Below, in pieces: positions 2,337 through 60,910 of a DNA stretch of 64,000 nt. Numbering within the stretch: the stretch's first letter is position 1; each line of letters begins with the position of its first letter. The translations under genes and the position numbers were made by a program. The notes beneath the pieces are model-generated. The model was not told the DNA's origin and made no database searches. It saw only the letters and a program-made list of their open reading frames with translations. This DNA is from Dimorphilus gyrociliatus (lineage: Eukaryota; Animalia; Annelida), in contig CAJFCJ010000046.1 of the NCBI GenBank assembly GCA_904063045.1, forward strand, positions 40,692 through 104,691. Reading direction: 5' to 3'.

Positions 2337-2518
2337 GGGGTCGACAGATAACATCCATAAATGACAAATTTCAAGGCTAGAATTTCGATTGAAATATGCT
2401 TAGCAAAACTGATTTCTACTTAGGAGGCTCTCCTCTATTGGAAAAGGTTAGGCACAGCCAAGCGCTGGGTTAGGGTTAGGGTAAAAGCAACAATTTGTGG
2501 ATGTTTTCTGTCGCGTCC
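2337..2518 (+). mobile_element. Mutator-type MITE with TTAGGG motifs (subfamily B)
   Basis: TIRs GGGGTCGACAGATAACATCC / GGACGCGACAGAAAACATCC (rc). Flanks TTCTGTAAT / TTCTGTATT form a 9-bp TSD with 1 mismatch. Internal GGGTTAGGGTTAGGG. Confidence 0.8.
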
Positions 2519-2661
2519 TTCTGTATTTTCTATTAACAATACTCTTTCCTCCTTTAATTTCTTTTAATAATAAATTGAGCGATCTAATGATAAAGAACAG
2601 CTTCACAATAGTCTCCATCGCAAAGAACATCTAAGAGAACAGAAATTCGGGACCGGTCAAA

Positions 2662-3728
2662 AATGAGTATGGGAAAACTCGTCCCCTTTTTGGGAAAACT
2701 CGTTCCTTTTTTTTGGGAAAACTCGTTCCTTTTTTTTGGGAAAACTTGTCCCCTTCTTTGGGGAAAACTTATCCCTTAAATTGATAAATAATGAAATAAA
2801 TAAAAATAAATGAAAAAATGACATATTGAATGAGAATTGGGTAGAAAAAAAAGTAGTTGCTCACTTCCTGTTGACAACTGTCTAAAGTGAAAAACCATAA
2901 TTTGATAATTTGGCTTAGTTATTAAAGGTCTGTTGAGAATAGAAATTTGTGAGTATATTGTTAAGATTATAGCTTATTATAAGTAGATTAGTTTATGTCA
3001 AATATGTGTTTTATTGCATTTTTTCAGTGAAACATCAAATTGAAAGATGGCTCCTGTTTGTTCAACCTGTAAAAATCGATTTTATGGCAGACAAAAAAGA
3101 ATAAAATGTGTTATATGCAATCAAATTCTTCATGAAAAGTGTCTTCAAAGTAAGTGTTACAATCTGTATAAACTGAGTATTATTATCTTCTTTTTTTCAA
3201 AGACCAGAGTCAGTTCATCTGCACCCTTTGTGAAACATTTCTAAAAAACAAATCAAGATACCTAATGAACCAGAAAAGAGTGGATCAAGATGAAAATATT
3301 GTAGCTTTGGGTGAGAATGGTCCCTCTGAAAATCCAGAACAGGGGGATACTGATACTTACACGAATCATGATGATAGCACACAAGACTTATTAGAGATGA
3401 GTGGTGAAAATGAAAATCATGCAGCTATGAATGAGAATCACTTGTCTGAAAATCAAGAACAAATGCAAATAGATACTAACATGGATCATGAGAATTATAA
3501 GGAGATAAATGAAGGAGAGGAAGAAGAAGAAGCAACATATGTAGATAAAGAGTTTAAAGTTTTGCTTGGTGGAAGTCAGAGAGGAAAGGATATTTTATAG
3601 ATAAATATATTATAACATTCTTTTCGAATTCTCTTACTATATAAGGGGACAAGTTTCCCCAAAGATGGGGACAAGTTTTCCCAAAAAAGGGGATGAGTTT
3701 TCCCAGGGATGAGTTTTCCCGTTCCCAT
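2662..3728 (+). mobile_element. Phantom-like MULE deletion derivative (subterminal repeat arrays, PHD exon, acidic linker, start of FLYWCH)
   Basis: GGGAAAACTCGTYCC repeats at 2670-2775 and inverted copies at 3644-3725. ORF 3047 has CSTC..CVIC..HEKC; ORF 3265 ends FKVLLGGSQRGKDIL. Confidence 0.75.
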
Positions 3729-3729
3729 A

Positions 3730-4650
3730 TGAGCATATCTTTATTCTCTCCCACAGTTCATTCTCTGAATTGAATTGTGCCCCATCATAAACCAAATTTT
3801 TAGTCAGGTGCCACACATTTTCTATTGGGCTAAGATCAGGGCTCTTTGCTGGCCAATCAATTGGATGTATGCCATTTGTCCTGAATGCTCTCCTGGTAAC
3901 TCTTGTTGTGTGACAACCTGCATTGTCTTGTTGGAAGATATAATTTCTCCCCATTTTATCTGAGATTTCTCCAATCACAGGGAGAATATCTTCTATAATA
4001 AAGCAAGAGTAATTTTGAGCATTTAATTTTTTGCTCACCCTCCAAACCTTGAACACCCCATCTGATGTTATTAGTCCCCAAACCATTACTCCACCTCTCC
4101 CCATATTTTTTGTTAACCTAAACTCATTTTCACTGCTATTTGTCCAGGTCCTGAAGTCATCAGGACCACTAAGTGAAAATCTGACCTCATCCATAAAAAT
4201 CACCCTTGACCAATCTATATTATCCCAAATGCTATCTAAACAATATTGTTTTCTGCGCAAGCAATTCTTGGGAGTCAAATCAACTCTTTGCCTTATCCTC
4301 TGTAGGTAAAATAGGTAATAAGTACAGAACTTAACTAAGAAAAGTAATATTGTTGAAAAAATTTCTGTTTCAGATGTCTATTTAAATGCAATTCCAGGAT
4401 GTCTGGTTTTTTTTTGTCTCACGGCCAAATAAAGAAAAAAAATTAAAAATTATTACAAAATTTTTGCTAATAATATTCACAAATTTGATGATTTTTCTCC
4501 AAGATTTTTTGGTAATATGTAAATATAACTCTTTTTTTGTGTAAATTTAGACAAAAAAAAGCAAATTTAAAACAAAGATAACAGTTTTCGGGTGTTTTAA
4601 AAATTGGCCTATCAAATTTTACAGTGTCCGGATATTTTTGTCCCTTACTG
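3730..4650 (-). mobile_element. Tc1-like transposon fragment (DD34E), N-terminal HTH deleted and 3' end truncated
   Basis: IFMDEVRFSL, GVMVWG, QQDNAGCH and WPAKSPDLSPIENVW, with 34 residues between D and E. Terminus TA-CAGTAAGGGACAAAAATATCCGGACAC at 4650. Confidence 0.85.
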
Positions 4651-4689
4651 TATATTAGTTGATTTTTTGAAACATGAGGCATCTTTAAT

Positions 4690-4923
4690 TGCAGTCTTTC
4701 AAAAGCTCAGATCAGAAAAGAAATTGAAAAATTGAATCTATTGGAGAAAACTGCCAATATTTATTCTCAATAGAAATCTCTTCAATTCTCTCAATTTCTA
4801 TCCATTTCCCTTTGAATATTTTACTTTTTTCTCTATTTATTAAATATATATTCACGTAGATAAATGTATCATAACATTCTTTTCAAATTCTCTTACTAAA
4901 TAAGGGGACTAGTTTTCCCATTC
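4690..4923 (+). mobile_element. MULE 3' end; 4856-4920 duplicates 3596-3660
   Basis: Encodes LLEKTANIYSQ*, like FLQKIALIYSN* at 48972. Ends GGGGACTAGTTTTCCCATTC. Confidence 0.65.
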
Positions 4924-6369
4924 CTGCCAATGAAATATTTGAAGGTTAGATTTCAGGCTGGGAAAAGGTTAGGATGAATAAGATAACTGTTAATTTGTTC
5001 TTAGGCAGGTCTCATCTAAGGGTTAGGGGCATTCAAAAAGGTTAGGCATAAACAAGGGTTAGGGTTAAGGTAAAACCATAGATTCGTGGCCATTTTCTAC
5101 CACATCCCAGAAATTCTCATCATCACCATTATTGTAGTTAATGTGCTGGCCGAGTTTGATTGCAAGCGAACTGAAAATGAGAGTACAACTTTACTATCTT
5201 CAATTGTGGAATGAGAACATTGGCTGAAAAATGATATTGAAGTTGAATCTTTTCTCAAAAGCATCATATCATTGTACTGAAAGTTGTACATCAATATTAA
5301 TATTATCTATACTTCTATTTACTTTGGACAAATAAATTTGGAAATAAAAGGAAACCTATACCCAATCCACAAAAAGAAAACCTTATCTCTTAAATTTTTA
5401 TAATAATAAATTTTGTAATTTTTTGTAATTGGCAAAAACCCACATAATCATTCACCAATAAAAAACTTGGAAACAAGAATTTGTATAAGAGATGAAATCA
5501 ATGACACCTGTTCAACAGATGGAAATTCATTGTACTCAATATAATATTATGTATCAATATAATAATGATATTAGAGACAATCATACTGAAAACATAAAAG
5601 CAGACAGTCAAAACAGGTAAAATATTTTGTGGTATGTTTTTAAAATAGAACACATTACTTTTGAGTGAGTTGTTTAAAAAATGTATTGTATTTTGAAATA
5701 TTTGAAAAATATTGAATACAAATTGTAAATAACAAACAATCAATTGTTAGAAATTAAATTTAAGACATGCATTCTCTTTTGCAGAGATTTTCTAATAAAA
5801 TTTCCATAATTGAAAATGTCTTTACTGGCCCTTTCTTCTGTTATTGGTAAATATTTTTCACAATGGAAATAATATTCAGATTTCTATAAAAAAAGGATCA
5901 AAATAAAGAATGTTTTTAATGTCTAAACAACTAAAAGTATCTTTTTATTACTCTGTAATAAAGAGAGTTTCCAAAATCATCATTACTAATTGCTAAACAA
6001 TCTTGATGAGTAGTTTTAACAAAATTAATCAAGTAGAAATAGCATTTCAGATATTTATAATTCTTGAAAAAGTTTTTATCAACCTGAAATTTGAAATCTT
6101 CCTTTGAAGAATATAGATAAAAAGAGAGTAGGTTGATATTATTATTTAGCAGTTTAACATCTGTTACAAATGAAACAAAAAGTTTTACATGAAAAAAACA
6201 TTTGGCAGAAAATATCCAATTTTTAGTGTGTAGAATAACAGTCTATTGGATGTTTTCTGTAGTCTGTTTTTTATACATTGCTGTGTTATATTGTTTTTTA
6301 AATTTTCCAACAGTTTTTTTCTGTAAATAGAAAAGATATTTCTGTTTGAGTAAATGAAAAGTGAAGATA

Positions 6370-9300
6370 TTATATAGCAAACTTTTTCTCTCTCTGATTG
6401 AAGCAGTGTCTTTTGTAACATAACTGCAAATGATTTATTATAAAAATATAAGGGTTAAGTAGTGAATTTAATGGGATAAGGCTAATGACAACTATAGTGT
6501 AAATATCATTTTTTATACTTAGAACAATTAATTTGGATAAAATTGCTGAGAATGTGAAAAAAAAATGAGTTAGATTTATAAGAAATTTATAAAATTTACA
6601 CTAAACATTCTTACAAAGAAGAGAAACCGGAAACCAGCATAAAACATTTGAAATTGTCATAAGAATAACATTTGTTGATAAACTATTTCTATTCTTTAAT
6701 AAACTAGTTGATTTGATTCTTAATGCTAATTTTCCATATAAAATGCATATAACAATGCTTAAAAAGAAAATAAATACTCCAAAAGTTAATAGTGAAAAAA
6801 TCCATCCTTCAGTCCTATCACTTCTAATTTGAATGTTAAAACATATTGTTGATTTTGAATAGTAATTCTATTTTAAATGAAAAAAATATAATCCAAAAAA
6901 TAATTTTTAAAAAATGTTTACACTATAAATGATAACTGGTAGAGTTGATATAAATATTAGCAAAGATGTTCCTACAAGTAGGATTATTCTTTTATATTTG
7001 ACTATAGCTGGAACTTTGAATAAATGCATGACAGCTTCGTAATGTTCCGTCGCTAAACCTAAAATTGAACATATTGAAAATAATAGTGAAAATGTTACCA
7101 GAGTGCCAAGAATTGAGCAAGTTGTACTAAATCTCCAATTATCCTCATTTTCTAAATAACTTGTACCAGAGAAATGAATATCGGCAATTGCAATAGAAAT
7201 TATATAAATTCCAGTTAATAAATCACCAACAGTTAGACAAATTCTAAATGATTTTGATTTCAATTTCACAAAAATTGATAAAAACAATGTGATTAAGTTT
7301 CCTATCACACCAAATGTTCCAAGAATCCAAAATAATATTCTTAAATAAATTGATGGAATTATATTTTCACAAGTCAGAAAATCATTTGGATTTGGTACAC
7401 ATTTCACTAAATTCTCTAAAACTTTCCATCCTAAACAACACAATTGGAAATTTTCATTTTCAATTTTATTCAACTTTTTCATATAATTTGTAAAATATTT
7501 TATATATTTCACTGGAAATTTTGTATTCTTCATATACAAAACTCTAAGATTTATTAGATTTTTAAATGAAAACTTTTCAATAAATTTTATAAAACAATTC
7601 TCCATTTTGAATATTTGTAAATTTTTTAAATATTTAAAAATATATTTTCTTGTAATTGAATGAATTTTTGTTGTTGAAATATCAAATATTAATAGATTTT
7701 TCATTGGAAATTTGAAAATTTTATCCAATTTTTCAATAGGATTATTTGATAAATTTAATTTTTGAAGAATGGTAAATTTGTTGTTGTTTAAAAATTGTAA
7801 TTTTGTTGAATTTGTATAGACAATATGTAATTGTATAACATTTGGAAAATATATATTTTTCCATCTATCTAATAGATTATTAAAAGAGATTTTCATGATA
7901 AAAATATTTGAGAGAATTTTCATATTTTCTATTCTTAACATAAAATCTCCATTTAAAATTACATGTTTAAAATTTGTATCTAAATTTATCATTTGTAATG
8001 ATTTTTTTGTTTGACAATCAATTGAAAATGGATTTAAATATTTGCAATTCTTCAAGGAATTTTGTTTAGGAAAATCACAAAATAATTCATCACTTCCTTT
8101 TTCACAATCTAATTTACCATTGCAAAATTGATGGTGTGCAATTATTTTACTCTCATTTCTACATTTAAAATATCCAGTTGGTGTGTAGCTGTCTATTTTT
8201 TAAAAGAAAAATGGATTTTTTATTCTACATGTTTAAGCAATATGGAATTTTTTTTATATTAACCACAAAATAATTCATCATCATTGTTATAGCAATGATT
8301 GATTCCATCACAAACTCTTTCAATACTTATGCAAAATCCAGAATAATAACATTTATATTGGAATTTTGAACAATTATGATTGTCACAATTTTTCAATAAT
8401 GAATAAGGATATCTAGCTTTTGTTATCATATTGCCTTTTGTATCATACTCTATAAAACACTTTTCAAGTGTTAGTATGTCTAATTTATCTTTTTTTTTAA
8501 AAACATTTTCACATTGATTTTCATCTTTTCCATCAAAACAATCCAACATAAAATTACATTGTTTCTCTTTAGTTAAACATATTCTGTCACATTTTAATTG
8601 ATATTTATCATTACAACCTATAAGAAATATTTATTTAAATAATTCATATTGCAGTTGGATTTTCAGAGAAAATATTCCCTATTTTTGGAACTAGATGAAT
8701 TAAAAAAAAAGCACACATCCTAAGAAATTCTCAATGGAGGTTTTTTTTTATTTTTTTACTGAAAAAAACTGGGAATATTTTATCTTTGTATTAAATATTG
8801 TATACTATTTTTATAGTATTTCTCTATTGCTTCCTCTTCATTACAAATCTCATCAGTTGAATCAAAGCAATTGATTTCATTATCACATATATTCTCAATA
8901 TTAATGCATTGTCCATTGTGGCATTGACTGCAAAAAAATGAATGATTTCTTTCTTGGAATGTTTTTCAAAGTTATTGTTAATAACAATTTATCTTTTCTT
9001 ACTAACCTTTCTCCACTTTCATTACACAAATGGAAATCTTTGAATTGGAGTGTTTTTTTTAAATATTAATTGCACTTTTTGTTTAATTAAAGAAAAAAAT
9101 ATTCTCACAACAAAACCTTTCATCTGATTGATCAGAACAATCATAAACAAAGTCACAAAGTAAAGAATAGCTAATCATTTCATTATTTGTTAAACATTGA
9201 ACATAATTGAATTTATTATGATCACAATCAATTTCGTCTTCATTAGAGATGCAATCATTTATTCCATCGCAAACGTAGACATAATTGATGCAAATTTTAC

Positions 9301-12434: not shown

Positions 12435-12779
12435 CTAATTGAAATTGGAGAAAGTGAACCTGAAAAATATATTTCTAGGTTGACGCTTGTTGTTGAAAAT
12501 TATCTTGCATTTTCCACAGTGAAAAATCCAAGTACTTTCAAAATATTGCAGCAAATTTGAAAATTTTCTCTTTTCTTGCAGTTGACACTTCAAGCTAAAA
12601 AATGTTGGAGAGATAATATCTGAAGGTAAAAAAGGTAAAGCCATCAACTTTCTCAGATCTCTGCAGTCATCTCCTTTCTGATTACATAGCAAATAAAATT
12701 TTCTCTTCTGTCTTCCATAAACTGTAAATTTACAATGTTTAATACAATATTTGAAAAGCAGTGAAGAAATTTGAAGCAA
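12435..12779 (-). mobile_element. MULE transposase C-terminal fragment
   Basis: LRKLMALPFLPS..LLQYFESTWI motif, shared with fragments at ~52090 and 59406. Confidence 0.65.
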
Positions 12780-12838
12780 ATAATTCTAATACAATTTCAA
12801 ATTCATTTGAAGAAGTTTAGGTGAATGAAACTTTTGAA

Positions 12839-15189: not shown

Positions 15190-15800
15190 AACTAAGCAAT
15201 AATAAATAAGTGAAAACAAATTTCAAAGCTATGAAACTGACTTTTATAAGCATAAACACATCCTTGAATCGTTGTTGTTGGAAACATTTCTTCAATAAGG
15301 CTGCCTCAAAGTCAACTACTATTTTTTTTGGTTGATGACCATCTAAAATATCAGCTAACACCTAAAATATATGTAGTGTAATTCATGAAAATGTGATATA
15401 TATATTTACCTTAAAAACAGCTTTATAAGATTTTTTCTTTCTTTGGCTCGTAAAAGCATAAACTAGAGGAACTTGCTTATAATTTCCATTTTTCTTTATG
15501 AATGCATGAACTGTGAAAAGCTGTTGAAATGGTTCTGAAATCACTTTGAAGGTTCCATCCATAAATAATATTTTTGCTTTTTTCAACAATTCGATTTGAT
15601 GATTATTACCAAAAATGATATATCTTGCATCATCCTTTTTAATATCCTTTATTGAAAAATTTTCAGGAACAAAATCATTGTTCAAAGTAAATGAAAGATC
15701 AGCTGGATAGCTAGGTCTCAATTTTCCTTTGTATCTGTCTGCTGTTCTTCTCATGCTCTCAATAAGTGGAAGTTTCTTACTTTGATCTAAAAATTTTCAC
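15190..15800 (-). mobile_element. MULE transposase fragment, copy B (catalytic core only)
   Basis: FMDGTFKVISEPFQQLFTVH..VPLVYAF; after an intron, KIVVDFEAAL. Confidence 0.75.
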
Positions 15801-15814
15801 CTGAATTTTTCTGT

Positions 15815-17724
15815 AAACAGCTTGATTCCAATGGAATAAACAGCCTGTTAGTGTAACACTTTCCCAATTGTCTAATGCAGCTTTCCATACTGCTCTTTCA
15901 TAGTCCAGAACAATTTTCTTTGGTGTTTTGTATTCCAAAAGTTCATTTAGTGTCTGTTAATAAAATGTTATTTACTTTGAAAAAATTGTATTTTTATAAA
16001 TACCCTTACCCTAAACAAAATATTGTATGCTTTTTTCTTCTTTGATGTCATAAAAGCAAAGAGTAGAGGAACTTGTTTTAATGCTCCCTCTTTCTTCAAA
16101 AATGAATGAATAGAAAACAGCTGTTTGAAAGGTTGTTTTACAATGCTAAAAGTTCCATCCACATACCAAATTTTTGAAACTGAAAGCAGATTGAGTTGCT
16201 TCAATGTGGAGAAAATAATGATTCTTTCACCATTTTCAAAAATATCTTTTCTTAAAAAATCATCTGGTATGAAAGTATTATTTAAAAGAAAATTTCTTCC
16301 AATAGGTTCAGTAGGCTGAGTTTTTCTTCTATGGTAATTAATCATTTCTTTACAAGTATCTACCTTCAAGATATTGCCCATATTTGCATATGGGAGTATA
16401 GCATTTTCAGCTAATCTTTTTCCACTTACATTAATATTACATTTTCCACTTTGTTTTGCTGTCAGTTTAATTTCAATGTTTTGCTCTAAGTTTTTTTTAG
16501 GTGGATGAATGTGTGATTTAGAACCTAAGTGAAAATTGCTACCTCTTTGAATTATACTGGCAGGGCATCTGATTTTCTTGTTCCTGACACTACATATCCA
16601 AATAGTACTACTTTTGTACTGTCCTTTTATAGTAAAAGAATTATTATTGTGTACAAGCAACTTTTTTTCTCTTTGACTTCCATTTTCAAATACTTTGAAA
16701 TGACCATCTGCCTCATCAATCTCCTCTGGTAAACTTTCAAAGGAATCCTCAACATCTTCAACAGTTGGTATTCTCTCATCATCCAAAGTTGCCTCCATAG
16801 TTGATGCAGCACAGTTGATTTCATCTGTGTTCATGTCTTTTAAAGGTAGCTCATTTGCTTCAATAGCATCTGCTGAGAAATGAGAAACAACTTGTTCATG
16901 ATCAACATCCATAGAAGTAACCGTAATGTTTGCTAATGTCTTATCTTTCTCTACAGCATTTTTTATTGGCTCTTTAATATTTCCCTCAATAGTAGATTCT
17001 TTAGTTGCATCTTTGATTGTACAACTATTATCACACCTTCTCAAAACAATTTTCAAACTTCTGATTTGAATAGATGAGCAAATGGAGCATAATCCATCTA
17101 ACAAAATTAAACATAAACATTAAGATTTAAATATGAAAAATCTAACCTGATAAGCATGTCCAATGAAGTTTGTGAGAACAATGAGAACATGTTCCTTGTT
17201 TTAGTTTATTAATTTTTTTTCTACATTCAAAGCAGAATTTTGCCATGTTGATAAATTTCTTTCAAATACCTGTTATGTCAAAGATCATGAGAATTAAAAA
17301 AAAATTGTAAGATATATACATGATTTTAAAGAGACTAATATTTTTATCAAAACAATTGTTACTTTTGAAGGATTACAATGCAGAAAATCACTTAATTCGA
17401 ATAGCTAACAATTCAATTTTCACAACAAATCAAGTGGTAAAACATTACTCTACAAAAAAAACTGGTAAAACAATTTCTTTCATTATCACTCAGAGATTAC
17501 AAATAATAAATACAAACTACTTCATAAATTATTTTCATATATTTTGCATTTTATTAAGCATACTGTAAACTTCTAGTACACTTCTGGGCGACTTCTGTCA
17601 TAGTCCTGGGTGACTTCTATCACACTTCTGGGCGACTTCTGTCACAGCTCTGGGCGACTTCTATCAATGTCTGGGCGACTTCTGTCCTGGGCGACTTCTG
17701 CCCTGGGCGACTTCTGTCGTATTC
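15815..17724 (-). mobile_element. Phantom-like MULE, copy A: PHD-FLYWCH-MULE transposase open for ~445 codons over 3 exons, 3' truncated
   Basis: Exon 17246-17147 plus a 49-nt intron completes a C4HC3 PHD. FLYWCH (WIC..C..HIH), YVDGTF, then exon ~15958-15817 with LDYERAVW..GCLFHW. Element end GTCGTATTC at 17724. Confidence 0.85.
17580..17720. repeat. Subterminal tandem array of CTGGGCGACTTCTRTC (~7 units)
   Basis: Direct repeats with short spacers immediately inside the MULE terminus. Confidence 0.85.
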
Positions 17725-19278: not shown

Positions 19279-19445
19279 NNNNNNNNNNNNNNNNNNNNNN
19301 NNNNNNNNNNNNNNNNNNNNNNNNNNNNNNNNNNNNNNNNNNNNNNNNNNNNNNNNNNNNNNNNNNNNNNNNNNNNNNNNNNNNNNNNNNNNNNNNNNNN
19401 NNNNNNNNNNNNNNNNNNNNNNNNNNNNNNNNNNNNNNNNNNNNN
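19279..19445. other. Assembly gap
   Basis: Run of ~167 N. Confidence 0.99.
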
Positions 19446-20734
19446 ATAAATCATAAAGATTTCTATGATTTGAACAGTTTAAAGGTTTTTAAAGTTGAAA
19501 ACTGTTTCCTAAAAACAATAGCAGAACAATCATTTGGGAAAATGAGAAATGTTGAAATGTTACTTTTAGACAATACCATTTTCCCAACATCATCTATAAA
19601 ATATTTTACAAACTATATGCACAAGTTGAAAATTGTTGAAAGTGAAAGTTTTCATTTATGCTGTCTAATATGGAAAATGCTTGGAAAACATGTGAAATGT
19701 CAACCAAAACCATCTGGTTTCCTGACTTGTAAAAGTATCATACCATCATCATTTTTGAGAATACTCTTTTGGTTAATTGGAATAATTGGTGTAATTGGAA
19801 ATTTATTTGTTTTGATGATGACAATAAAAATAAATATGAAATCCAAATTATTTCGACTCTGTTTGATAATTGGAGATTTACAAACAGCAAGTTATGTCCT
19901 GTCTATTGCAGTTGCTGACTATTACTTTAGTTTTTCAAGTTATCTAGAAAATGAAGAAACTTGGAGGTTTAGCAATGGATGTACCCTCCTAGGTACAATT
20001 TTAACATTTTCACTATTACTTTCAATGTTTTCAGTTTTATGTCTGGCAATTGAACGTTATGAAGCAATCGTAAATCCATTAACATGACCTTTTATATTAA
20101 GATATCGAATTGCTGTATTAACTATTGGATTTTTCAGTGTACTTCTTTTATCAATAATACCAATAATATTTTTTCAAGTATTAGCAAAAACTATTCCTTT
20201 TTTTAGTTTTTAGATTTTTTCTTTTTGCCTTTAATGAACTTTTCTTTCCAGAAATTTTACACAAAATCAACAATTTGTTTTAATATACAAGTTCGAAGTG
20301 ACAAAACCAATGGTTGGGTTTATTCATTTCTTGTATTTGGTATATTGTTCTTTGCAATAAGCATTGTATTGTGTTGTTTGTATGGAAAAATTACTTTAAA
20401 AGTAAATAACATTGTTTTATCAAAAAAGAGATCTTTGTCAAAGAATATTTATATTCTAACAATCTCAAATGTTTTATGTTGGTTACCAATTTCAGTCTTA
20501 TGTGAGGGTTTTTTCTGTAACCCATTCAAGTTAACTTAATTAGTTTTCTATATTTTTTTTTTAGCAATTCTATCAAAACTGCTGTACATCAACATAAAAA
20601 ATGATGTGTACACAATTTTTGTCATATCCCTTATCCCATTAAACTCACTACTTAATCCGTACATTTTTTGTTTTGACCAATGCATGATTTGGAATAAAAG
20701 AAGAAAGTTGAGGAATACTCGAAATAAGTCTTAA
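19446..20734 (+). pseudogene. GRL101-like GPCR C-terminal half (LRR end plus 7TM) with an in-frame TGA
   Basis: Colinear with 6370-7600, with the same intron positions. TGA at 20085-20087 precedes TM4 and the frame continues hydrophobically. NSLLNPYIF; stop at 20732-20734. Confidence 0.75.
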
Positions 20735-23406
20735 TTTTTATAAATTTTTCCCAATACTTTTTTTACAAATGTAATTTATTTTGATAAAAACTTCCTTCAG
20801 ACAACTTCTCATCAAGTCAATAACTGATCAAATTAAAACTCAGTGTCTTTTTCTTTCTATTTTCTTCATCCCAACATACTCATATTTTTCCCTTTTTTTC
20901 AATCTTCAGATATACAATTCTTTAATAATAGGATCAAAGCAACTTCCAGTTTTCTAACTGCCAAAAGCTTTTCATACAGTGAAGAATTTTTTACAAATTT
21001 TGAATATTTGAAATGTTTTATATATTCAATCAAATTTTTAAAACATATCCATTCAAATTCATTAACATTTGCCAAAGAAGATTTTGAAAGTATCTTATAT
21101 TTAAAGGTTTCAATTTTTTTTCTAGTCTTAGTTTTTGAAAAATAAAAATATTCTTTTTATTTTGTTGATTTTAAAAGTTGGATCTTTATCAAAAATATGT
21201 CTACTTTATTCATTGTGAAGATTTTCAACTCACAGCAAATACAGATTTAAGTAAAGATATTATGAAGTTTGGAATCTTTGTTAGAAAATTTCTCCAAAGA
21301 AATATTCAATATAAAGTAAAAGAATGACTCATTTTCAGGTCTTGTAAAAACCTATTTGTTTTTTGTATCTTTCATGTAAAATACTACTAAATTTTTCTTA
21401 TGTATACAATAAACATTTTGAATATTTGTACTCAATAGACACTGGCAAATGTACATATTCATGTTTTTATTGTGCACTAGACATATACACTCATCAACAT
21501 ACAGGGTTTAGGATTAGGGTTGGGTTGGGGTTTGCCCCCTTCCCTTCCCTCTCTGTCATTTACCCATAGAGAAAAGCACACATTGCTCTAAGATACAGAT
21601 ACTACAGAAAACATCCTCAAATGTGTGGTTTTACCCAAATTTTTACCTAATTTTATTTCTTTTATTTATTAAAGATCTCTTCAAAAACATCTTCTTCTTT
21701 CATTTCATTATTTTCTTTTTTAACCTTTTTTTTTACTGTCTAATTGCCTGGAATAATTTTCTCAGAGATAATTTAGAGTTTCTAATTTTATTAATGAGTG
21801 CATTTATTGTTTCTAATTTATAATCATTTTCCATAAAGCTTCTGATATTCTCTTTTCCTTGTTCATAATTATAGATGTTCTCTTGTACTAGATAGATATT
21901 AGCATAAAAGAAATTGACTTTTTCCTTAAGTAATTGTTGTAATTCCACTTTGTGTTTTCTCAAAAGTAGTCTTGTAAGGGCATCCATATTATTTTTGTAC
22001 AACCTTTTTACCTTCTTTTCTCTCAAATTGTGTTCTTTTCTTTCTAGGTTGAAGAGAGCTGCATTAAAACTTTCAGTCTCATTTATATGATCTTAAAAAA
22101 GTGAAAGTAGAAAAAATAGCTACTTATACTTTCATTTATACTTTTACTTTTCTATTCACAGTTTTTTGTCTAAAGTACATTTTGTCAAGTTCAATATTGA
22201 TGACTCATCAGAGTCAACAAACTTTTACTTACAGAGAGGTTGAAGATTTCCAATATTTTCTTCTTTGGGTTTGATTCAGTATATATATATATATTGTAGT
22301 ATTAAAAGTACTATGGCAGAGATCATTTTTAAGGTAAATTTTCTGAAGTTGCTATGTTTGTTAAAGAGTTTTTAAAAATTTTTTGAAGATTCATCATAAA
22401 ATATGCAAATCTAAAAACTTTCTGGAATGTTTTCAAGGCCAAAAGCAATGTGTTGTACAAATTCTTGTAAAATCTGACCAAATCTAGTTTTTAACAATAT
22501 TATTTGATCTATTTTTTGTTAGGTCTAGCAGAAAGGAATTCTGCTTGATACAAGTCATAATATTCTCTCTGGCTGAGCTTCAAAGATTGTAAATTTTCAG
22601 ATTTCTGACTTTCCAATGTTGGGGCAAGCTTTGATTCAAGTCCAGCCTGGCACAGTGTTAGATTTTGGAGTTGGAAAAATTTCAGTAAGACTTTTGTTTC
22701 ATAGTGTTAGCTTTTAATACTTTAAAAAGAACTATATTTCGTAGCATTTCCCAGAGTCACCCTTTTAAATTAGTGTAGAAAATACCAACCAATATGACAT
22801 TCAAGGTGTTACAACCTCTTGTGAACCTTATTTTTTTTCCAACCATGCCAAATGGTTAGATTAAATTTCACCATTTTTTTGAATAACCAAAGATATTGAA
22901 AATCTACAGAATGAATGTTTTAATTTTTAAAAAATTGATTTTAAATGGAAAAAAAAATTTTTACTATACATTTTTCAAAAACAGAACAATTCTTTAAAAA
23001 TGTTATTCAAAAGTTTAAAAATTGCAAAAAATAAAAAATAGTAACTTTCAAAATTCAAAAAGATATATTCTCTTGATTCTTAAATACTTTACATGAGTTG
23101 TGTCTGAAGAAATGTAAAGTAGTACAAAATAGTCATTAATTTAAGAATATGTACACTGGTAAAAGCTTATCCCTGTTTAAATTTTCTAACATCACTCAAA
23201 TAAAATCACTGATCATTTGAAATTGAAAGTTTTCAATTCAAATTTAATTAAAATTTAAGAAAACTGGTAATATGATTGGAGATGCTATAAGTCTAAATTG
23301 ATTTGAACACATGTTCAAAATTCAAAATGAAAAATCTTTTTAGAAATAAAATTAAAGGTTTAAGCATTGTTTAGAAAACAATAACAAATTTTTGATTTTA
23401 CAATTA

Positions 23407-25936: not shown

Positions 25937-26010
25937 GGATATGACAGAAAACGTCAAAAAATGAGTGCTTTCACTGTAACCCTAACCCAGTCCTTAGCTG
26001 TACCTAACCA
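25937..26010 (-). mobile_element. Partial MITE (one end only)
   Basis: GGATATGACAGAAAACGTC..ACCCTAACCCAGTCCTTAGCTGTACCTAACC matches the start of 51123. Confidence 0.65.
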
Positions 26011-26641
26011 GTGGAGGTTGTTTCCAGGTGGTCTTCCCATGTCCTTGGGTCCAGATAGGAGTGCTGCTTCAAATAAGAATAGTGAGGATTTATATACTTT
26101 GCCTCTGATATCCAATCATCACTTTACATCACTTTGCAGTTGCCAAAATGTGTAGTTCATATTTATGTTTAGTAACGGAATGTTACAAGGTTCAACATTT
26201 ACGAAGGCTAATTAAATTATAACTTGGCCAAACCTTTATTGGTAATTAAAGATGAGCCTTCAAGCTGACTAATCAGACATGTGTTTGGCCAATGTTGTAG
26301 CATTTTCTTGCATAGGTTTTAAGAAGTACAAGTAAAAGTTGCATAAAATAATAGAGTTCAAGCATGTAAAATCTAACCAGAGTTGTACAACATCTATTGT
26401 GGAAATATAATTATTCAATTTAGGGTTAGGGAAAATACATAATATAGATTTTACACTCAACTTCAGATATATTGAGGTAGGATTCAATCCTCCAAGGATA
26501 CGTTTGCACATCTATTCAATTATTTACTAATATTAAAAAATTATTAAATCTTTTCATGAAATGAAATAATCCTATCTTTCTTAATTAAGATAAACTTCAA
26601 ATCACTACTCTTTCAGTAAAATCTTCTTTTGCCAAATGGAT

Positions 26642-27680: not shown

Positions 27681-28916
27681 TTTGTTGCAGAAGCATTTCT
27701 ATGTAAACAATTACTGTTGTTAGGCCTACACAGTATGTGTCAGCAAAATCATAAGAAAAGTACACACAACTAGCATCAGAGATAGGCAAATTCTTTCACA
27801 ATCTCTCAAACCTATTCGTATTAAAGTCGCCATTTGAAATATTTAAAATATCAAAGTTTATGGCATAGTATCTAGCATTTCTCAACACAGGAACTTTCAC
27901 AATTTGACCAGTAGGCCATTTAGGAGTTTGAATATCTAATAATGACTCTTTGAATGATATAAATTCATAATACTTCAAAAGATAAAAAATAGATAAGCAA
28001 TTTTTCAATATTATAAGATAAAAAAAACCTGGTTTTATTGAATTGAATAAAATGGCTAGAGATTGAAAAACAAGAAGAATTTGTAATCTTCCAATTGAAA
28101 CCATCTTTGCTGTTTTAAAGTTTTACCAGTTTACTTAGCTGATTTGGCTCAAATTTTGTATAGGTGTTCGTTTGTCCCATATCAAAGCCTAAACCAAATT
28201 TCAAGGGAATCTGAGCAGTTTGAAATTTTCGATAATTTCACTGACCAACTTACAAGTGGCAGACACTAACATTCGACCTTTAGGTATACCAAACCTATCA
28301 ATAATCAGTCTGGTGGCGATTGTATTGAGGCTTTTCCTCTCAGTTGACAAAGGAGGAATACCTTCGAATTCTTGTGAGATTTTAAAGAAGGTGAGAAGTA
28401 GAATTGCTGCAGTTCAGATTCTCTTCACTTTTGTTGAGAGTTTGAATTTGTGGTGTTGGAGATACAGCGTAGCTTAGGCTAGAAAGGACTACTTAAGATA
28501 GTCATTCCTAATAGCCACATTCACCAGAAACCTAAAAAGTTTGCATTGTGTGTGCTGTGTGTGCATTAAGGGGATTGCCAGTTGTTAATTCCCTAACACT
28601 TAAGAACTAACCTAGCTCTTGCCTCTCCCTAACCTTTTTGACTAGTATGGAAGCCTCCAAACTACAAATCAAAAGCTACTTTACTCATCATTACCAGTTT
28701 TCAATCTGAAATGTTACTATCAAAAATATCACGTGGAGGCTTTTGCTTTTAGTTGTTTTCAAGTATGACTATAAACTTATATTTTATAAGTTGTTTGGCT
28801 TTATTCATCAAATTACTTAATTACAATTAGACGCTCTATAGAGACGGTCTTAGAAATGAGTTGCATTAAAGAAACACAATTATATTTTGCCCTTTTATAG
28901 ACACGATTCTTTTCTT

Positions 28917-39311: not shown

Positions 39312-40729
39312 ACAGTACAGGTAACCTATTTTTGAATGCCCAGCTATTTTCTATATTAGTTAAATTATTTTTTATTTAACATTAACTTTACAATCCAATA
39401 ATTAGAAATGGCAATTGCCACTTTGTAATCAACATATGCAATTAATTAAATCTTCAAATTTCACTGTTTGAGTAACAAAAAAAATTTTATTCTGAAAAAA
39501 TCACGAAAATTTATTTCAAGAATTGAAGTAGGATAAGAATTTTAAAAAAAGTTAAAAAGTGCCCAGAATTAGTTTGGATATGAGAAAATTGGTTGTGGTA
39601 AAGAGGAAGGAGAAGATGTCAATGAAGGAAATTGCAAAACAATTAAAAATTTCCAAGGGATCTGTGCATTATATTATAAAAAAGTTCCAGAAACATGGAA
39701 CCATAAATAATTTATCCAAATTATGTACCCCAAGGCTTTTAAGAGAAAGTGAAGAGAGAAAAATTAATCAAATTTGTAAGAAAAATCCATTTTTAACTGC
39801 CAGGAATGTGCTTGAACATTCGGGACTAAACACAAAAATTTCACTGTCAACCTGCAAAAAGATTTTGCAGAAAAATGACCTTAAAGGCTATGTTGCAACC
39901 AGTAAGCCGGCACTAAGACCTTACCATGGAAGAAACAGAAAAGCATTTTGTAATTCGATGCTAGACAAGAGTCAAGAAGATATAAGTGAAATTATATTTT
40001 CGGATGAAAGTCGGATAGAGCTATATCCAAAAAGGAGAATATGGGTCCATAGGGGCATTGACAAACGGTATGATCCAAAATACACCAAAAAAGCTATTCA
40101 AACAGCTAATGCTTCAATATCAATATGGGGGTGTATAAAAGCTGATGGGACAAGAGCTATAAAGCTTTATAATGGGTATATGTACAGCATTCTATATCAA
40201 GAAATTATTGAGGAGAAGCTCTTTCCAATTTTTGAGGTAGGCAACCTGCTTATGCAGGATGGTGCCAAATGCCACACATCCGCCTCTACAAGGAGGTTTC
40301 TGGAAAGAATCAATATTGAAATTTTGGAAGACTGGCCTTCCAGAAGCCCAGAATTGAATATTATTGAAAATTTATGGGCTTACTTAAAAAATAAACTGCA
40401 GACCCATGTTTTACAGACCATTTGTGGAGGGCAGTAGAAGAGGAGTTTAATAACATACCAAACTCTTATATTACAAATTTATACAAAAGCTTCCATAAAA
40501 GAGCCAGATTATGTCAGAAAAAAAAGGATATAATATAAGATATTAAAGAAAAAGAAAAAGTGATTATTTGAAGTAGAATAATGTATATGTTAATAAAATG
40601 TAAAAATAAACATATTTCTTGCCTTTTCCAACAACAATTTTATCAGAATTTGTAAAGTTCAAAAATAGGATATCAGGCACTTTTTGTGATTTTTTCAGAT
40701 TACAAAGTGGCAATTGCCATGTCTAATTA
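39312..40729 (+). mobile_element. Tc1-like transposon, near-complete DD35E transposase with a C-terminal frameshift
   Basis: Paired-like HTH, FSDESRIEL, IWGC, QDGAKCH..WPSRSPELNIIE. 32-bp inverted repeats at 39399-39430 and 40698-40729 (1 mismatch). TA-CAGT start at ~39312. Confidence 0.85.
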
Positions 40730-42841: not shown

Positions 42842-43744
42842 GCCTACAAATACACTGTGATGTTTTGATTTTGATCAATTGATGAATAAGTTGATGATGA
42901 GAAGGATAGGGAATTTTTAAGAAATATAGAAAATATTGAAATGATAATAAATTATAGGCCTAATCTAATCTTTTTCACCTTAGTAAAACATATCAACATG
43001 TTTTAAATATTATTTTTCTTCATTAAATCATAACAACTAAAACAATAAAATTTATATAAATTATACTTTGTTGTATTATAAATGAAGGAATTTCTGCCAT
43101 ATCACAACTGCATTCGTCTTTTCAATCCCCTTCAGTCAATTGGTAATCCAATTTATGGAAAAAATTTCAAAACTAATAATATAAATAATTTATATCTAAC
43201 TGAGTAGTAGAAAATATATAGATAGTCTGTTCAGGTTTTCCAGTTAGATCATAACAAATATATATAAACAAAAGCTACATGTAATCAAGAGTGCTATAAT
43301 ACAATTGTTTGATCTTGTCTTTCACTTGTGGATAAAGGGGCATATGAACCAGATGCAGAAAGTTCTTGTTCACGTTGTCGAGTTGCTGAGGAAACTCTAC
43401 AAAAAAAATATCAAATTGAGTTAAGAGAAAAGAAAGAAAAGAATTTTAATTAAACAATGAAAGTGTATGAAGTTTTAAAAGAAAAATAAACTTTATTTTA
43501 CATTCACCAATTAATATTGTTGTTCATCTCCAGCATAGATGTTTGGCTTTTACTTGAAAATGTATTTGAAAGGCATTATTTGATTTTTTGATCATAATAA
43601 ATAAATATACGCTATTCCTGTTCAAATTGTGATGACTATTGAACTGTGCATTACTCACACATGGCGTTTTCAACAACCCACTTGGCTGATAAATGTTGAT
43701 GATATTTTAAAACCATTTAAAATATCCAAATATCTAGGTGTAAA

Positions 43745-43935
43745 ATAGCTTTTGATTTATAGTTAGCTGGGTTCCATCTAAGGGTTAGGGCTAGTCAACA
43801 AAGTTAAGGAGTGACAAGGGCTAGTTTAGGGTTATTTATAAATTTAATAGTTATATTCAAAACTTACTTTACTCCTCCTAACCATTTTTCAACCCGAAAA
43901 GTTGCTTTCAAAAATCTCATTTTGGGACATCCATT
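43745..43935. mobile_element. Decayed MITE pieces in both orientations
   Basis: TAGCTTTTGATTTATAGTTAG..CCATCTAAGGGTTAGGG matches the interior of 45732. No TSD. Confidence 0.55.
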
Positions 43936-45731: not shown

Positions 45732-45938
45732 TGGGCCAACAGAAAACATCCCCAAATGAGATTTTTGAAAGCAACATTTCGGATTCAAAAATGGTTAGGA
45801 GGAGTAAAGTAGCTTTTGATTTATAGTTAGGGGGATTCCATCTAAGGGTTAGGAGCAATCAAAAAGGTTAAGGAGAGACAAGGGCTAGGTTAGGGTTAGG
45901 GTTAAACTGTGCTTTTGGGGACGTTTTCTGTCATATCC
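45732..45938 (+). mobile_element. Mutator-type MITE with TTAGGG motifs (subfamily B)
   Basis: Perfect TSD CTTTTAACC (45723-45731, 45939-45947). TIR core ACAGAAAACRTCCCCAAA. Confidence 0.85.
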
Positions 45939-50726: not shown

Positions 50727-52440
50727 ATGGCTTCACTTTGTCCAAATTGTGACATTCGATTTTATGGCAGACAAAAGAAGATAAAATGTGTTGAATGTCA
50801 AAAATTTTGTAATAATTTTATAGAGGACTCATTTGAAATGAATGAGGAAGAAAAAGCAGATCCAAATGAAAAATTCACACTTCTCTTTGAAGGAAGCCAG
50901 AGAGGGAAGGATATTCTATCACGTGATGGATTTGCTTTCAATATAAAGAAATGAAGTGAGTATATGATAATTTGGAGAAATAAAAAAAATTTGTCTTGCA
51001 ACAATCAAAGAAAGAGGAAATATATTTGCCTCAAGTCATATACATCATAACCATGAAAAAAAGGAAGAATTTAATATCAAGTATAAAGGCAAGGAGAGAA
51101 CTAAGAAGTATTTGTACTAATGGGATATGACAGAAAATGTCCACAAATCAATGCTTTTGCCCTAATCCTAACCCAGCCCTTAGCTGTACCTAACCTTTTC
51201 CATTACCCCTAACCCTCAGAGGAGACCCTCCTAACTACAAATCAGTTGCTGTTTTCTTTCACCTAACCATTTCTCAATCCAAATTTTTGTCTTGAAATTT
51301 CTCATTTTTTTGTGGACATTTTCTGTCAACCCCGTACTAATGATGTCAGGTCATCAGGCAGAAAAATTGCTGAAGATATTTTATAAAAATGTTCAGCTTA
51401 GGAGAATAGTTTGCCAAATATGGAAAATTTGAGAAAATTAGCTAATATCACCAGACAGAAGAAAAGACCTATAACATCAAATGATCCTTTTTTTGAAATA
51501 AATATTGATTTTCTTCATGACAATTTACTGCAAAACGATGTTTCATTTGGAAATCAGAGAATAATCATATTTGCTTTCAAGCAACAGTGAAACCTTTTAT
51601 CCAAAAGCAAAGTTTGGTATCTGGATGGTACATTTAAGGTTGTCAAAGAACCATTTGTTCAACTTTTCTCCATCCATTCTTTTATTAAAAAAGATGAAGA
51701 AACAAAGCAGATTCCTTTTGGCATTTATTTTCATGACATCAAAGAAGAAGAAAGCATATAAACAAACATTAAGGGTAAGTTAATAAACATTTCATCTAAC
51801 CTCTAAATTTCATGATATTCTTTAGGAAATTCAAACAATTACAAATTATTCCAAACCAAAAAAGCTCTTTTGCTGATTATGAGTTAGGATTATGGACCAC
51901 TTTATTTTGTGTTTATCCGAATGTACCAATTCAAGAATGTGTTTTCCATTGGACACAAGCAGTTTTCAGAAAAATCCAAGTAATATATTATATTACATAG
52001 TTTTATTATATAATCATTTCATGTTTTTAGAATTTGGGATATGCAACTGACTATAAAACTAAGCTGGCCTCTAAAAATATGATGTGAAATTTATTGGCAC
52101 TTCCTTTTCTTCCTTCTCAAGTAATACCCCATATTTTTTCATCTTTACCACTTCTACCATCAAAAATCATTAAAGTTCATTCAAGAACTTGGAACAGACA
52201 ACTTCAACACGATTAGGACCATTTATTGATTACAAGAACCAGTGGTTATATTGATATTATCCACCGCATGCCTGGTCAATATATGGTAAAGCAATCAGAA
52301 CCAACAATGATCTGGAAGGATGGCGTAATAGGTTAAACAGGAATAATCATGCAAATTCTTCATTGTATGTGATCTTTGATGAATAAAAGAGAGAAGCAGA
52401 GTTCAAGAAAGAAATTATCAAGTAAGAAAAAAGATATGTA
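50727..52440 (+). mobile_element. Decayed PHD-FLYWCH-MULE transposase gene with a MITE insertion
   Basis: CPNC..CVEC, GSQRGKDIL, YLDGTFKVVKEPFVQLFSIH, ADYELGLW..CVFHWTQAVFRKIQ, RTNNDLEGW; many stops. Confidence 0.8.
51123..51333 (-). mobile_element. Mutator-type MITE with CCCTAA motifs (subfamily B)
   Basis: Perfect TSD GTACTAATG (51114-51122, 51334-51342). TIR core TGACAGAAAATGTCCACAAA at both ends. Confidence 0.92.
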
Positions 52441-52454
52441 GACAGCTAAGGAAA

Positions 52455-58141: not shown

Positions 58142-59065
58142 ATGGTCTATTCAAACATTTACATCTTCAGTTTTGCAGTTTTTAATCAAGTTATTGGATT
58201 TCTTTTGAATAGTAATTTAATCCTTATCTCTTTTCTTAATAAAAATCTTTGGAAATTACATAATTTTGGTGTGACAGTATTGACATTCACAGATGTTTTC
58301 TACTCATTAAGTGTATTGCTCTTGATTTTGCTTTATAAGGAACAATTAAAATATTACCATTGTCTTATTGCAGTTCAATTTATATTTATGATAATTACAG
58401 TATCATCTTTAACCTTGACCTTAATTACATTTGAAAAGTTTGTGGCAGTTGTAAAACCATTAACATTCTATAAAAATTGGACAATGAAGAGAGCTTTTTT
58501 CTCACTTTTCTGTATATGGTCAATTAGCTTTGTCATTTGCTCATTACCTTTTATGGGTTGGAACAAATACAAGGCCATTTTGAAGGTCAATAATACTTTT
58601 CAATGTAACGCTTTCAGTGTTGTCTCTTCTTCTTATCTTTATTTATGGCTATTTACTACTGTTTTACCAAATTCAATTACCAGTTTACTATTATACATTC
58701 CCATTCTAAGAGCTGTACAGAGGCACAGACAAGTAATTTCTGATCAATCAAATAATGTTAATAATATAAATTCTGAAGGGAGTAGTATTGGAACTTTAAC
58801 CTGTCTCTTGGCAATTAACTGTTTCTCTTGTATTCTACCAGCAGTCTTTGTTGTTGCTAACAATAAGAGACTGACAGAAAATTATGGTTTATCAGAGGCT
58901 AATTATGATTTAATGGTTGATATTGCAACAGCAATTGGTGCTTTAAATCCAACAATACATCCACTTGTTCATGGTTATACTAAATCATCAGTAAGACTTG
59001 ACACAAAGAAATTTTACCTAAAAATACTTAGAAAGATTACTTGTAAACAAACATTCAGAAAATAA
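58142..59065 (+). CDS. Orphan single-exon rhodopsin-like GPCR
   Basis: Seven hydrophobic segments; TFEKFVAV at the DRY position, LPFMGWN, ECL2 Cys, HPLVHGY in TM7. Confidence 0.85.
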   Translation: MVYSNIYIFSFAVFNQVIGFLLNSNLILISFLNKNLWKLHNFGVTVLTFTDVFYSLSVLLLILLYKEQLKYYHCLIAVQFIFMIITVSSLTLTLITFEKFVAVVKPLTFYKNWTMKRAFFSLFCIWSISFVICSLPFMGWNKYKAILKVNNTFQCNAFSVVSSSYLYLWLFTTVLPNSITSLLLYIPILRAVQRHRQVISDQSNNVNNINSEGSSIGTLTCLLAINCFSCILPAVFVVANNKRLTENYGLSEANYDLMVDIATAIGALNPTIHPLVHGYTKSSVRLDTKKFYLKILRKITCKQTFRK

Positions 59066-59405
59066 ACAAACACAATTTATTATTTATGCTCAGCTATCAT
59101 TCTTTTAAGAAATTCAAATAAATTTTCACAATAGTTAGCTGTTTTTTTTGTGAGAGAAAATGAAAATGCAATTATTAGAAATATGTCACAGGTTATAATT
59201 ATATAATTAATATAATAACAGGAATTAAATATTCCAGAACTTGTTGTTCTGTTGCCAAACTTTGATGGAACTATCATTTATAGCTTCTACAAAATCAGAT
59301 TGTGAGAGAGAAAGTTATTCATTCAAAATCTTAAAGGGAATGAACTAGAAAGGAAAAGATTTGCTACTTATTTAATTTAGCATTTGAGCTCCAGATCTAA
59401 CTGAC

Positions 59406-59594
59406 ATGTTTATTTTCAGAAATTATGATTTTGTAAGATTTACAAAGCAGAAAAAAGTTGAATATAAAATCATGAAGAAATTAATGACATTACCATTCGT
59501 GCCCTCTGATCTGATAGAACCAACATTTAAGACTCTTAAAGAAATATATCCAATTGAAATGAAGTCTCTATTTAAAGAAGTGGGTTTAATATGA
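59406..59594 (+). mobile_element. MULE transposase fragment
   Basis: MKKLMTLPFVPSDLIEPTF motif. Confidence 0.6.
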
Positions 59595-59639
59595 TTTGTG
59601 GAGAACTTGAAGCCTCATGCAATACTTTGAAATCAATTA

Positions 59640-60910
59640 CTGTTGTTTAGGATAATTTGAATGATAGAGAAGAGCAATGATGCTTGAATATACATTTCAA
59701 ATCTGTTCATCATTAAATTTTATTAAATTATCTTGGAATAAGAATATGAGAGATGGCTTTAAAAATATTTGTGATGGACTCAAAAACCTTCTCTTATACT
59801 TTAAAATCAATCAATGTAGCTTCATGTGAGTTAAATGCTGATCAAGCTAAGATGTGAGGTGAATTATGAAAAAAGCTGTTCATCATTAAAAGATATTGGG
59901 TTATCTGGTAATGAGAAAATGGGATATGTATTTAGAAATATTTGTGAAGGACTGAAAGCCTGCTCCAACACTTTGAAATCAATAAATGTAGATTAGTGTA
60001 AGTTGAATATTAAGCCAGCCATGATGTTAGGGAAAATCAATTCAGAAATGTTAATGGAAAACATTTGTTTAACTGGTAATGAGAATGTTGGTGAAATATT
60101 TTAATTTATTTGTGAGGATTGCAATGTCTCCTCCAGGATTATTAAAACAATTGCAAATTGGTGTAATTTAAGTGCTGAACAGGCAATGATGTTGGAGAAA
60201 ACATTTAAAAACTGTTCAGCATTAGAAAACATTTGGTTATATAATAATGAGAATATGGAAGATGGATTCAAGTTTGTTTGTAAGGGACTCAATACATCTT
60301 CCAATACCTTAAAATCAATTGATATAAGTTGCTGTAACTTGAATGCTGAACAAGCAGAGATGCTTTGTCAAACATTACATAAGTCATCATTTTTAGAAGA
60401 TATTAATTTATCTTACAATGATAGCATGGGAAATGGATTGAAAGTGATTTGTGATAGACTCCAGTTCTCATTCAATACATTGAAATTAATTTATGTATCT
60501 TGCTGTAATTTGAATGTTCAACATGCAATGATACTGGGGCAAACATTTAAAAACTCTTTTTCAAACATTGAACACATTAAGCTAAATGACAATATAGATA
60601 TTGGAGATAAATTTAAAATGGATGTGGTAGAAAATGGCCATAAATGTATGGTTTTACCCTAACCCTAACCCAGCCCTTGTTTTTGCCTAACCTTTTTGAA
60701 TACCCCTAACCCTTAGATGGGACCCTCCTAAGAACATATCAACAGTTATCTTATTCCTCCTAACCATTTCCCAGGCTGAAATCTAACTTTCAAATATTTC
60801 ATTTATGGTTGTTTTCGACTGGTCCCATTTAAAATGATTCGTGAAGGACTCCACATCTCCTTCGATACTTTACAATTAATTCATATAGCTAGGTGCATGT
60901 TAAGCACTAA
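59640..60910 (+). pseudogene. RNI-like LRR pseudogene interrupted by a MITE
   Basis: Repeated GFK.IC.GL..SS.TLKSI....C.LN.EQA units, with several stops before 60186 and an open stretch 60186-60619. Confidence 0.85.
60620..60826 (-). mobile_element. Mutator-type MITE with CCCTAA motifs (subfamily A), young copy
   Basis: Perfect TSD ATTTAAAAT (60611-60619, 60827-60835). Nearly identical to the reverse complement of 30949-31162. Confidence 0.92.

Follow-up and report, generated by a model that had tools for sequence, protein, structure and literature searches.

A probable Mutator-type family of miniature elements that disperses telomere-like TTAGGG blocks in the annelid Dimorphilus gyrociliatus

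Introduction

Transposons of the Mutator superfamily, or Mutator-like elements (MULEs), produce target-site duplications (TSDs) of 8-11 bp, typically 9 bp (PMC6446971, PMC5225508). Among the closest described systems, the Muta1/Muta families of the Phantom group in Aedes aegypti are ~3 kb long and generate 8-9 bp TSDs with no target preference (PMC5225508, PMC6446971), and they have given rise to non-autonomous derivatives that number in the hundreds, whose ends are truncated and whose interiors are unrelated (PMC5225508). Tm1, a Phantom-type Mutator/Foldback element of Meloidogyne root-knot nematodes, bears asymmetric outer motifs with 13-15 bp tandem repeats inside them (PMC3169594). In the genome paper of the annelid Dimorphilus gyrociliatus, MULEs account for 1.50% and MITEs (miniature transposable elements with inverted repeats) for 0.08% of the genome, the MITEs being matched only to Mariner (PMC7854359). 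Here, a family of short elements whose interior holds telomere-like TTAGGG blocks is analysed in a window of 64,000 nt (D. gyrociliatus contig CAJFCJ010000046.1, positions 40,692-104,691; assembly GCA_904063045.1) and across the genome of the worm.

The best explanation overall is a ~207-bp MITE family of the Mutator (MULE) superfamily, with ends of the type found on resident transposons encoding FLYWCH and MULE domains, and we regard this assignment as likely. Because MULE-derived MITEs are already known, the classification itself is ordinary. What is unusual is the behaviour of the blocks, which are absent from the autonomous MULEs and form the best-conserved part of the MITE across subfamilies, yet decay freely after insertion. 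This pattern of constraint suggests a sequence kept for spreading rather than for the host, and it offers a testable case of a MITE evolving an accessory module.

Copies and relics in the window

The initial annotation of this DNA, made from its letters alone, had proposed six TSD-bounded copies, all of which were verified at their coordinates, with 9-bp duplications that are perfect except in c1:

2337-2518, + strand: MITE copy c1, 182 bp; TSD TTCTGTAAT/TTCTGTATT, 8/9 matching
2649-5107, + strand: MITE copy c2, of the c3/c6 type, split by nested insertions; TSD CAGAAATTC
30949-31162, + strand: MITE copy c3, subfamily S1, with a 7-bp insertion; TSD ATGGAATAT; canonical G-quadruplex (G4) motif GGGCTGGGTTAGGGTTAGGG
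45732-45938, + strand: MITE copy c4, subfamily S2; TSD CTTTTAACC
51123-51333, - strand: MITE copy c5, subfamily S3; TSD GTACTAATG; host site a MULE-C-like transposase fragment
60620-60826, - strand: MITE copy c6, subfamily S1, the typical 207-bp form; TSD ATTTAAAAT

Lengths in the window range from 182 to 214 bp, the composite c2 aside, and most copies listed from the genome measure 207 bp. The elements are short and non-coding, with imperfect ~27-nt terminal inverted repeats (TIRs), 9-bp TSDs and many near-uniform copies, which is what defines a MITE. Copy c1 is an old, shortened outlier, kin to the c5-type subfamily, and its best matches in the genome reach no more than 75-78% identity. No MITE copy overlaps the assembly gap at 19279-19445, and the nearest related feature is 1.5 kb away from it; no sequence spanning the gap occurs among the genome stretches compared, and the finding is unaffected.

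The copy at 2649-5107 is a TSD-bounded member of the family, as had been claimed, but its size of 2.46 kb is that of a nested-insertion composite and not of a larger relative. Its own MITE sequence comprises 2649-~2664 and 4921-5107, and the right 180 bp are 84-89% identical to c3 and c6. Between these two parts lie three other pieces:

2665-3722, + strand: nested, internally deleted MULE-C with GGGAAAACTCGTCCCC-type terminal arrays and a zinc-finger first exon
3753-4206, - strand: nested Tc1/mariner DDE_3 transposase fragment (PF13358, 54.3 bits)
4870-4920: second, partial MULE-C end

The open reading frame (ORF) of the nested MULE-C breaks off where the FLYWCH region begins, and its left terminus, GAGTATGGGAAAACTCG, is common to the MULE-C of L063 (L-numbered loci are stretches of the D. 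gyrociliatus genome). A reading of the long copy as an autonomous or larger member of the family is thus ruled out, since the MITE is split by MULE-C pieces and a Tc1/mariner fragment.

Relics had also been proposed near 21500, 25937, 28600, 33050, 34080 and 43750. Those near five of these positions belong to the family by BLAST and reading, whereas the site near 33050 has telomere-like motifs with no tie to the MITE found by the same means:

21604-21639, - strand: relic, a short piece of terminal repeat
25937-26009, - strand: truncated S3-like relic with a GGAT-type end and a telomere-like block
28607-28731, - strand: truncated relic with an S2-like interior
34234-34282, + strand: relic with a decayed GGAT-type end and a degenerate telomere-like block
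43736-43834 (+ strand) and 43857-43927 (- strand): two S2-like fragments in opposite orientations

Near the first of these relics lies a degenerate telomere-like tract (21505-21540). Elsewhere in the window, a lone TTAGGGTTAGGG at 26420-26431 stands outside every recognisable family copy.

Genome-wide abundance, age and transposition

Searches of the D. gyrociliatus assembly (77,897,245 bp) show that the family is abundant. In a whole-genome pattern count, 437 sites match the 27-nt telomere-like block of the MITE with at most 2 mismatches, against 0 for the control. Three subfamilies are distinguished, S1 (c3/c6 type), S2 (c4 type) and S3 (c5 type), each with at least 40 scored copies, from ~500 first-look candidates; c4 itself (S2) is matched in the genome by at least 40 copies that are 92-96% identical to it. 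Perfect 9-bp TSDs flank 25 of 30 further genome copies, and 4 more match at 8/9 positions. Apart from the AT-richness of the genome, no target-site consensus was found in the TSDs. Copies of S1 diverge by 1.0% from their consensus and by 1.8% pairwise (n = 31), which points to a recent burst.

Transposition is documented most directly by three filled sites with uninterrupted paralogues, each holding a single 9-bp target once the pre-insertion sites are rebuilt from the flanks:

Empty site 1: filled, window copy c5, target GTACTAATG; empty, L063 (4055-4463), single GTGATAATG
Empty site 2: filled, L024, target CTAGTGAAG; empty, L056, single CTGGTGAAG
Empty site 3: filled, L007, target AATGAAAAT; empty, L055, single AATGAAAAT
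~50923-51542 of the window: MULE-C-like transposase fragment, the target of c5, 77% identical to L063:4055-4463

The copy number (at least 437 sites), the 25/30 perfect TSDs and the low divergence of S1 therefore bear out the earlier proposals of an abundant and recently mobile element. The figure of one copy per 5-10 kb that accompanied them holds in the window only. The genome-wide mean is ~1 copy per 100-180 kb, and contigs C1-C26, several of them megabases in length, account for only 8 of the ~120 copies listed and for 15 among the first 100 perfect matches to the block. Since few listed copies lie on these low-numbered contigs, the density in the window is local. Most listed copies lie on higher-numbered contigs, and those examined are transposon-rich, a distribution that agrees with the transposon islands described for this genome (PMC7854359).

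One pair of S1 copies deserves separate mention. L028 and L029 (G000:C65:27103-27309 and 22108-22314) are separated by 5 kb, run in opposite directions and have mutually reverse-complementary TSDs, which indicates an inverted segmental duplication after insertion rather than two insertions.

Terminal sequences and superfamily assignment

Both ends of the MITE follow the form GGRNNNGNYMGAAAAYRNCCAYAAATG and make up an imperfect inverted repeat of ~27 nt. Each consists of a 9-nt outer motif (GGAT... at one end, GGG... at the other) followed by one ~13-nt core with the consensus [ACG]GAAAAY[GA][GT]CC[AC]. Profile searches of the genome returned at least 128 matches to the MULE domain PF10551 and at least 119 to the Merlin-type domain PF12762. 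TSD length cannot separate MULE from Merlin, and end sequences were therefore compared.

Several resident elements of the MULE type, 2.3-2.9 kb long and 2.7-2.9 kb where they encode FLYWCH+MULE transposases, carry a 9-nt outer motif of the GAAT/GAGT type at one end and of the GGG type at the other, and inside these lie 4-7 tandem units of 16-22 bp, each with a GAAAAC...CC core. Such composite ends were seen in MULE-A through MULE-F. The MULEs that were checked score 33-40 bits for FLYWCH and 41-57 bits for MULE, above the Pfam cut-offs, in searches run on ORF pieces and single exons, unjoined. The zinc finger encoded by their first exon stays below threshold for C1 (22.4 bits), FYVE (19.1 bits) and PHD (16.6 bits) in the unjoined exons. 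Two of these elements come closest to the MITE:

L055:1651-4336: MULE-A, ends GAATATGGTAGAAAACAGCCAGG and GGGACTGGTAGAAAATGGCCAGG
L056:2841-5587: MULE-B, core AGAAAACGTCCAC identical to the S3 core

The MULE-A termini agree with the two unlike ends of S1 at 17-18 of 22 positions and are asymmetric in the same way. In 466 kb searched on both strands, matches of this quality occur only at MITE ends, at MULE-A termini and, as a single 17/22 match inside another MULE locus, at L033:35-56, which is assigned to no element. MULE-B is a young, multi-copy element with at least 12 genome copies at 97-100% identity. As for TSDs, the MULE-E copy in L060 is flanked by a perfect 9-bp duplication, ATTAAGGAA, and a second copy shares 8 bp.

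Judged by the sequence of its ends, the MITE would best be explained as a derivative in which each end retains the outer motif and just one repeat unit. The proposed classification as a non-autonomous Mutator-type element is supported in that 9-bp TSDs, including those of the three empty sites, are combined with ends that match FLYWCH+MULE transposons and are unlike those of Merlin. Several observations nevertheless weigh against this assignment. The MULE-E copy in L057 lacks a TSD, as does the single MULE-B copy with readable flanks. The search for a full-length MULE with the same ends, suggested earlier as a check, yielded similar ends (17-18/22 for MULE-A; a MULE-B core equal to that of S3), but no autonomous element with ends identical to those of the MITE was found. 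In addition, the copies of MULE-A, the best-matching family, are old (82-84% alike) and their reading frames are broken, so that MULE-A is only a tentative candidate for the driver of the recent S1 burst.

A further array-ended element, type F (L057:6390-8682), has GGTTAAAAGGGTCC-type units, ends GAATATGG... and GGGAACCGG..., and A8 flanks; an S2-type MITE (L057:6453-6639) is nested just within its left end.

Telomere-like blocks: enrichment and conservation

The interior of the MITE contains six GGTTAGG blocks in a single orientation, spaced by 32, 22, 19, 22 and 6 bp. They comprise 2-2.5 tandem telomere units and four single GGTTAGG per element, and the row terminates in GGGTTAGGGTTAGGG beside the GGAT-type end. 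Although the family makes up 2.65% of the window, it holds 19 of the 41 TTAGGG and 29 of the 38 GGTTAGG found there. Individual copies contain 4-6 TTAGG and 2-3 TTAGGG, whereas shuffling a copy predicts ~0.1 TTAGGG. MULE-A and MULE-B have zero TTAGGG, and the blocks are thus specific to the MITE; for the same reason, the interiors of these two MULEs are rejected as the origin of the blocks.

TTAGGG is very probably the telomere repeat of the worm, given that TTAGGG arrays fill 231 five-unit windows of the genome (0 for the reversed control) and that one array, in telomere orientation, lies at the very start of contig C27. The bare 15-mer occurs in 846 genome windows, many of them inside true arrays, as against the 437 dispersed MITE-block sites. 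These sites, together with the 29 of 38 GGTTAGG of the window, support the idea that the family spreads telomere-like TTAGGG motifs. The MITE is a major source of isolated telomere-like blocks in the compact D. gyrociliatus genome, and it should be allowed for whenever G4 motifs or interstitial telomeric sequences are mapped in this model annelid. As a separate observation, two TTAGGG arrays face each other within one scaffold (G000:C23:755867-756527, + strand, and 757723-758684, - strand); they may represent a telomere-to-telomere join or a scaffolding artefact.

The consensuses of S1, S2 and S3 are 74-77% identical overall, and variation is distributed unevenly along them:

Columns variable between the S1, S2 and S3 consensuses: TTAGG core 1/30; other interior 52/123 (42%); TIR 19/53
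Columns changed within young S1: TTAGG core 1.1%; other interior 0.5%; TIR 2.1%

Between subfamilies, the TTAGG cores vary less than the rest of the interior (block permutation P = 3e-4; Fisher P = 2e-5), and TTAGG blocks make up all four of the longest invariant runs. Lineages that continued to transpose have thus conserved the blocks more faithfully than their own TIRs. Inside S1, differences represent post-insertion decay, and the TTAGG columns are unprotected. The pattern suggests that the blocks serve continued transposition and not the host, for it is what would be expected in that case.

A possible role of the blocks and its alternatives

Since the MITE is non-coding, resident FLYWCH+MULE transposases must presumably mobilise it in trans. 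These transposases would move the element and create the 9-bp TSDs, and pairing would follow end sequence, with MULE-A-like elements serving S1 and MULE-B serving S3 and S2. The founder may have gained its telomeric tract by capture or by telomerase-mediated addition or repair. Thereafter, the phased row of blocks could bind a host telomere-repeat-binding or DNA-bending protein and so help the 207-bp element to join its ends. We tentatively propose that the blocks form an accessory module that raises transposition success, likeliest through such predicted binding of a host telomere-repeat or DNA-bending protein. The more specific version, in which the GGTTAGG array would recruit a host telomere-repeat-binding protein that bends DNA and aids end pairing or transposition, is rather doubtful. 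If telomere proteins were recruited, the transposon would be borrowing the telomere machinery, with several hundred telomere-protein sites as a side effect.

The main rival holds that the TTAGG blocks are neutral passengers, derived from a captured or telomerase-added (sub)telomeric tract and persisting by shared descent, and we consider this a serious possibility, if short of a probable one. A captured tract would have all its blocks pointing one way, as is seen here, and the blocks are missing from the autonomous MULEs. Telomere-repeat insertions at repair sites are known in vertebrates (PMC8537989), and the absence of protection in inserted copies is also in keeping with neutrality. Neutral blocks, however, should diverge like their neighbours, whereas 1 of 30 block columns varies between subfamilies as compared with 42% of the surrounding interior (block permutation P = 3e-4, as above); subfamilies differ at 23-26% of positions, and still their longest invariant runs are TTAGG blocks. 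Two points count against an accessory module in this weighing. The single orientation of the blocks fits a captured tract as well as a functional array, and the conservation test compares three lineages only, with S2 and S3 consensuses built from 3-4 copies each.

It is improbable that the selected feature is a G-quadruplex rather than the TTAGG sequence. With a canonical motif defined as four G-runs, each of 3 G or more, separated by loops of 1-7 nt, S1 copies bear the four-run motif GGGCTGGGTTAGGGTTAGGG, intact in 24 of 31, and it is intact in 2 of 4 S3 copies. However, none of the three S2 copies has the motif, nor does c1. Missing from S2, half of S3 and c1, G4 formation is not a conserved feature of the family and is rejected as such. 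Moreover, the TTAGG cores are invariant even in copies without a four-run motif, and four of the six blocks are not covered by a G4 motif.

Host co-option of the copies as dispersed telomere-protein sites with a chromatin or regulatory role is less probable still. Hundreds of dispersed sites with 2-2.5 telomere units would be available for such use, but the motif columns of young copies mutate at least as much as the rest of the interior (1.1% vs 0.5%), and most listed copies lie on higher-numbered contigs, transposon-rich where examined. With no protection of the motif in inserted copies, nothing points to host use.

A Merlin (IS1016/IS1595-related) origin of the MITE is highly improbable and largely refuted: Merlin also gives 8-9 bp TSDs and G-starting ends, and IS1595-type DDE domains are abundant (at least 119 matches), but the Merlin-type elements read at six loci are ~1.1 kb long with ends such as GGGGCTCCTTAAGTTATTGTGCCACC and GGTGGGTGGGAAGTTCATTACCCC, none of which resemble the GGRNNNGNYMGAAAAY ends that match MULE termini specifically. 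Compact ~1.1-kb Merlin-type elements with clear TIRs occur in L043-L054 (e.g., L049:1290-2431, L051:915-2066 and L052:1338-2439). The DNA-transposon table of the genome paper lists Mariner, MULE and Helitron only, and no Merlin (PMC7854359). As Merlin elements and non-Mariner MITEs are both missing from it, the published annotation appears incomplete.

Other transposons and genes in the window

Beyond the MITE copies and their nested insertions, the window contains a MULE-D related to the autonomous group:

15968-17724, - strand: truncated MULE-D with a FLYWCH ORF at 15968-17104
17584-17724: MULE-D terminal array of seven CTGGGCGACTTCTGTC units, ending in GAATACGACAGAAG (reverse complement)

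Pieces of further MULE ORFs are found at 15383-15754 and 12435-12779. At 39559-40437 (+ strand), a Tc1/mariner transposase ORF that appears to be open encodes 292 aa and includes HTH_Tnp_Tc3_2 and DDE_3 domains. Two LRR-GPCR (leucine-rich-repeat G-protein-coupled receptor) paralogues, at 6907-8055 (- strand) and 19446-20087 (+ strand), are 72% identical over 453 bp; because the second starts directly to the right of the N gap, its 5' part may sit in the gap.

Comparison with known systems

The MITE family is undescribed in the genome paper (PMC7854359), and a limited literature search found no MITE with conserved telomere-like blocks. Its presumed relatives among the MULEs of the worm resemble the Muta families in domains and in end architecture: both encode a FLYWCH+MULE transposase, and in both a terminal motif is followed by tandem subterminal repeats, which measure 9-15 bp in the Muta families and 12 bp in Muta1. 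In contrast to the Muta derivatives, the MITE keeps one repeat unit per end, has a uniform length of 207 bp and has diversified into subfamilies. Its conserved, phased, telomere-like interior has not been reported for Muta derivatives.

Tm1 shares the 9-bp TSDs without target consensus, the FLYWCH+MULE transposase and MITE-like members (PMC3169594). It differs in that some of its members carry histone-hairpin motifs, which are not telomere-like, and its repeat units and outer motifs are unrelated in sequence to those of the worm. Rehavkus, listed with a PHD finger and a 9-bp TSD for arthropods and annelids (PMC6446971 table), has the annelid host and the TSD length in common with the present elements. 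A cross-brace zinc finger may likewise be encoded by the separate first exon of the worm MULEs, whereas the FLYWCH fingers of the latter are not listed for Rehavkus in that table.

Interstitial telomeric sequences at double-strand-break repair sites provide the last parallel (PMC8537989). They are short internal tracts and a possible source of the 2.5-unit block of the founder. Unlike tracts left at repair sites, the tract in the worm is mobile, is copied by transposition and forms part of a conserved, phased array of six blocks.

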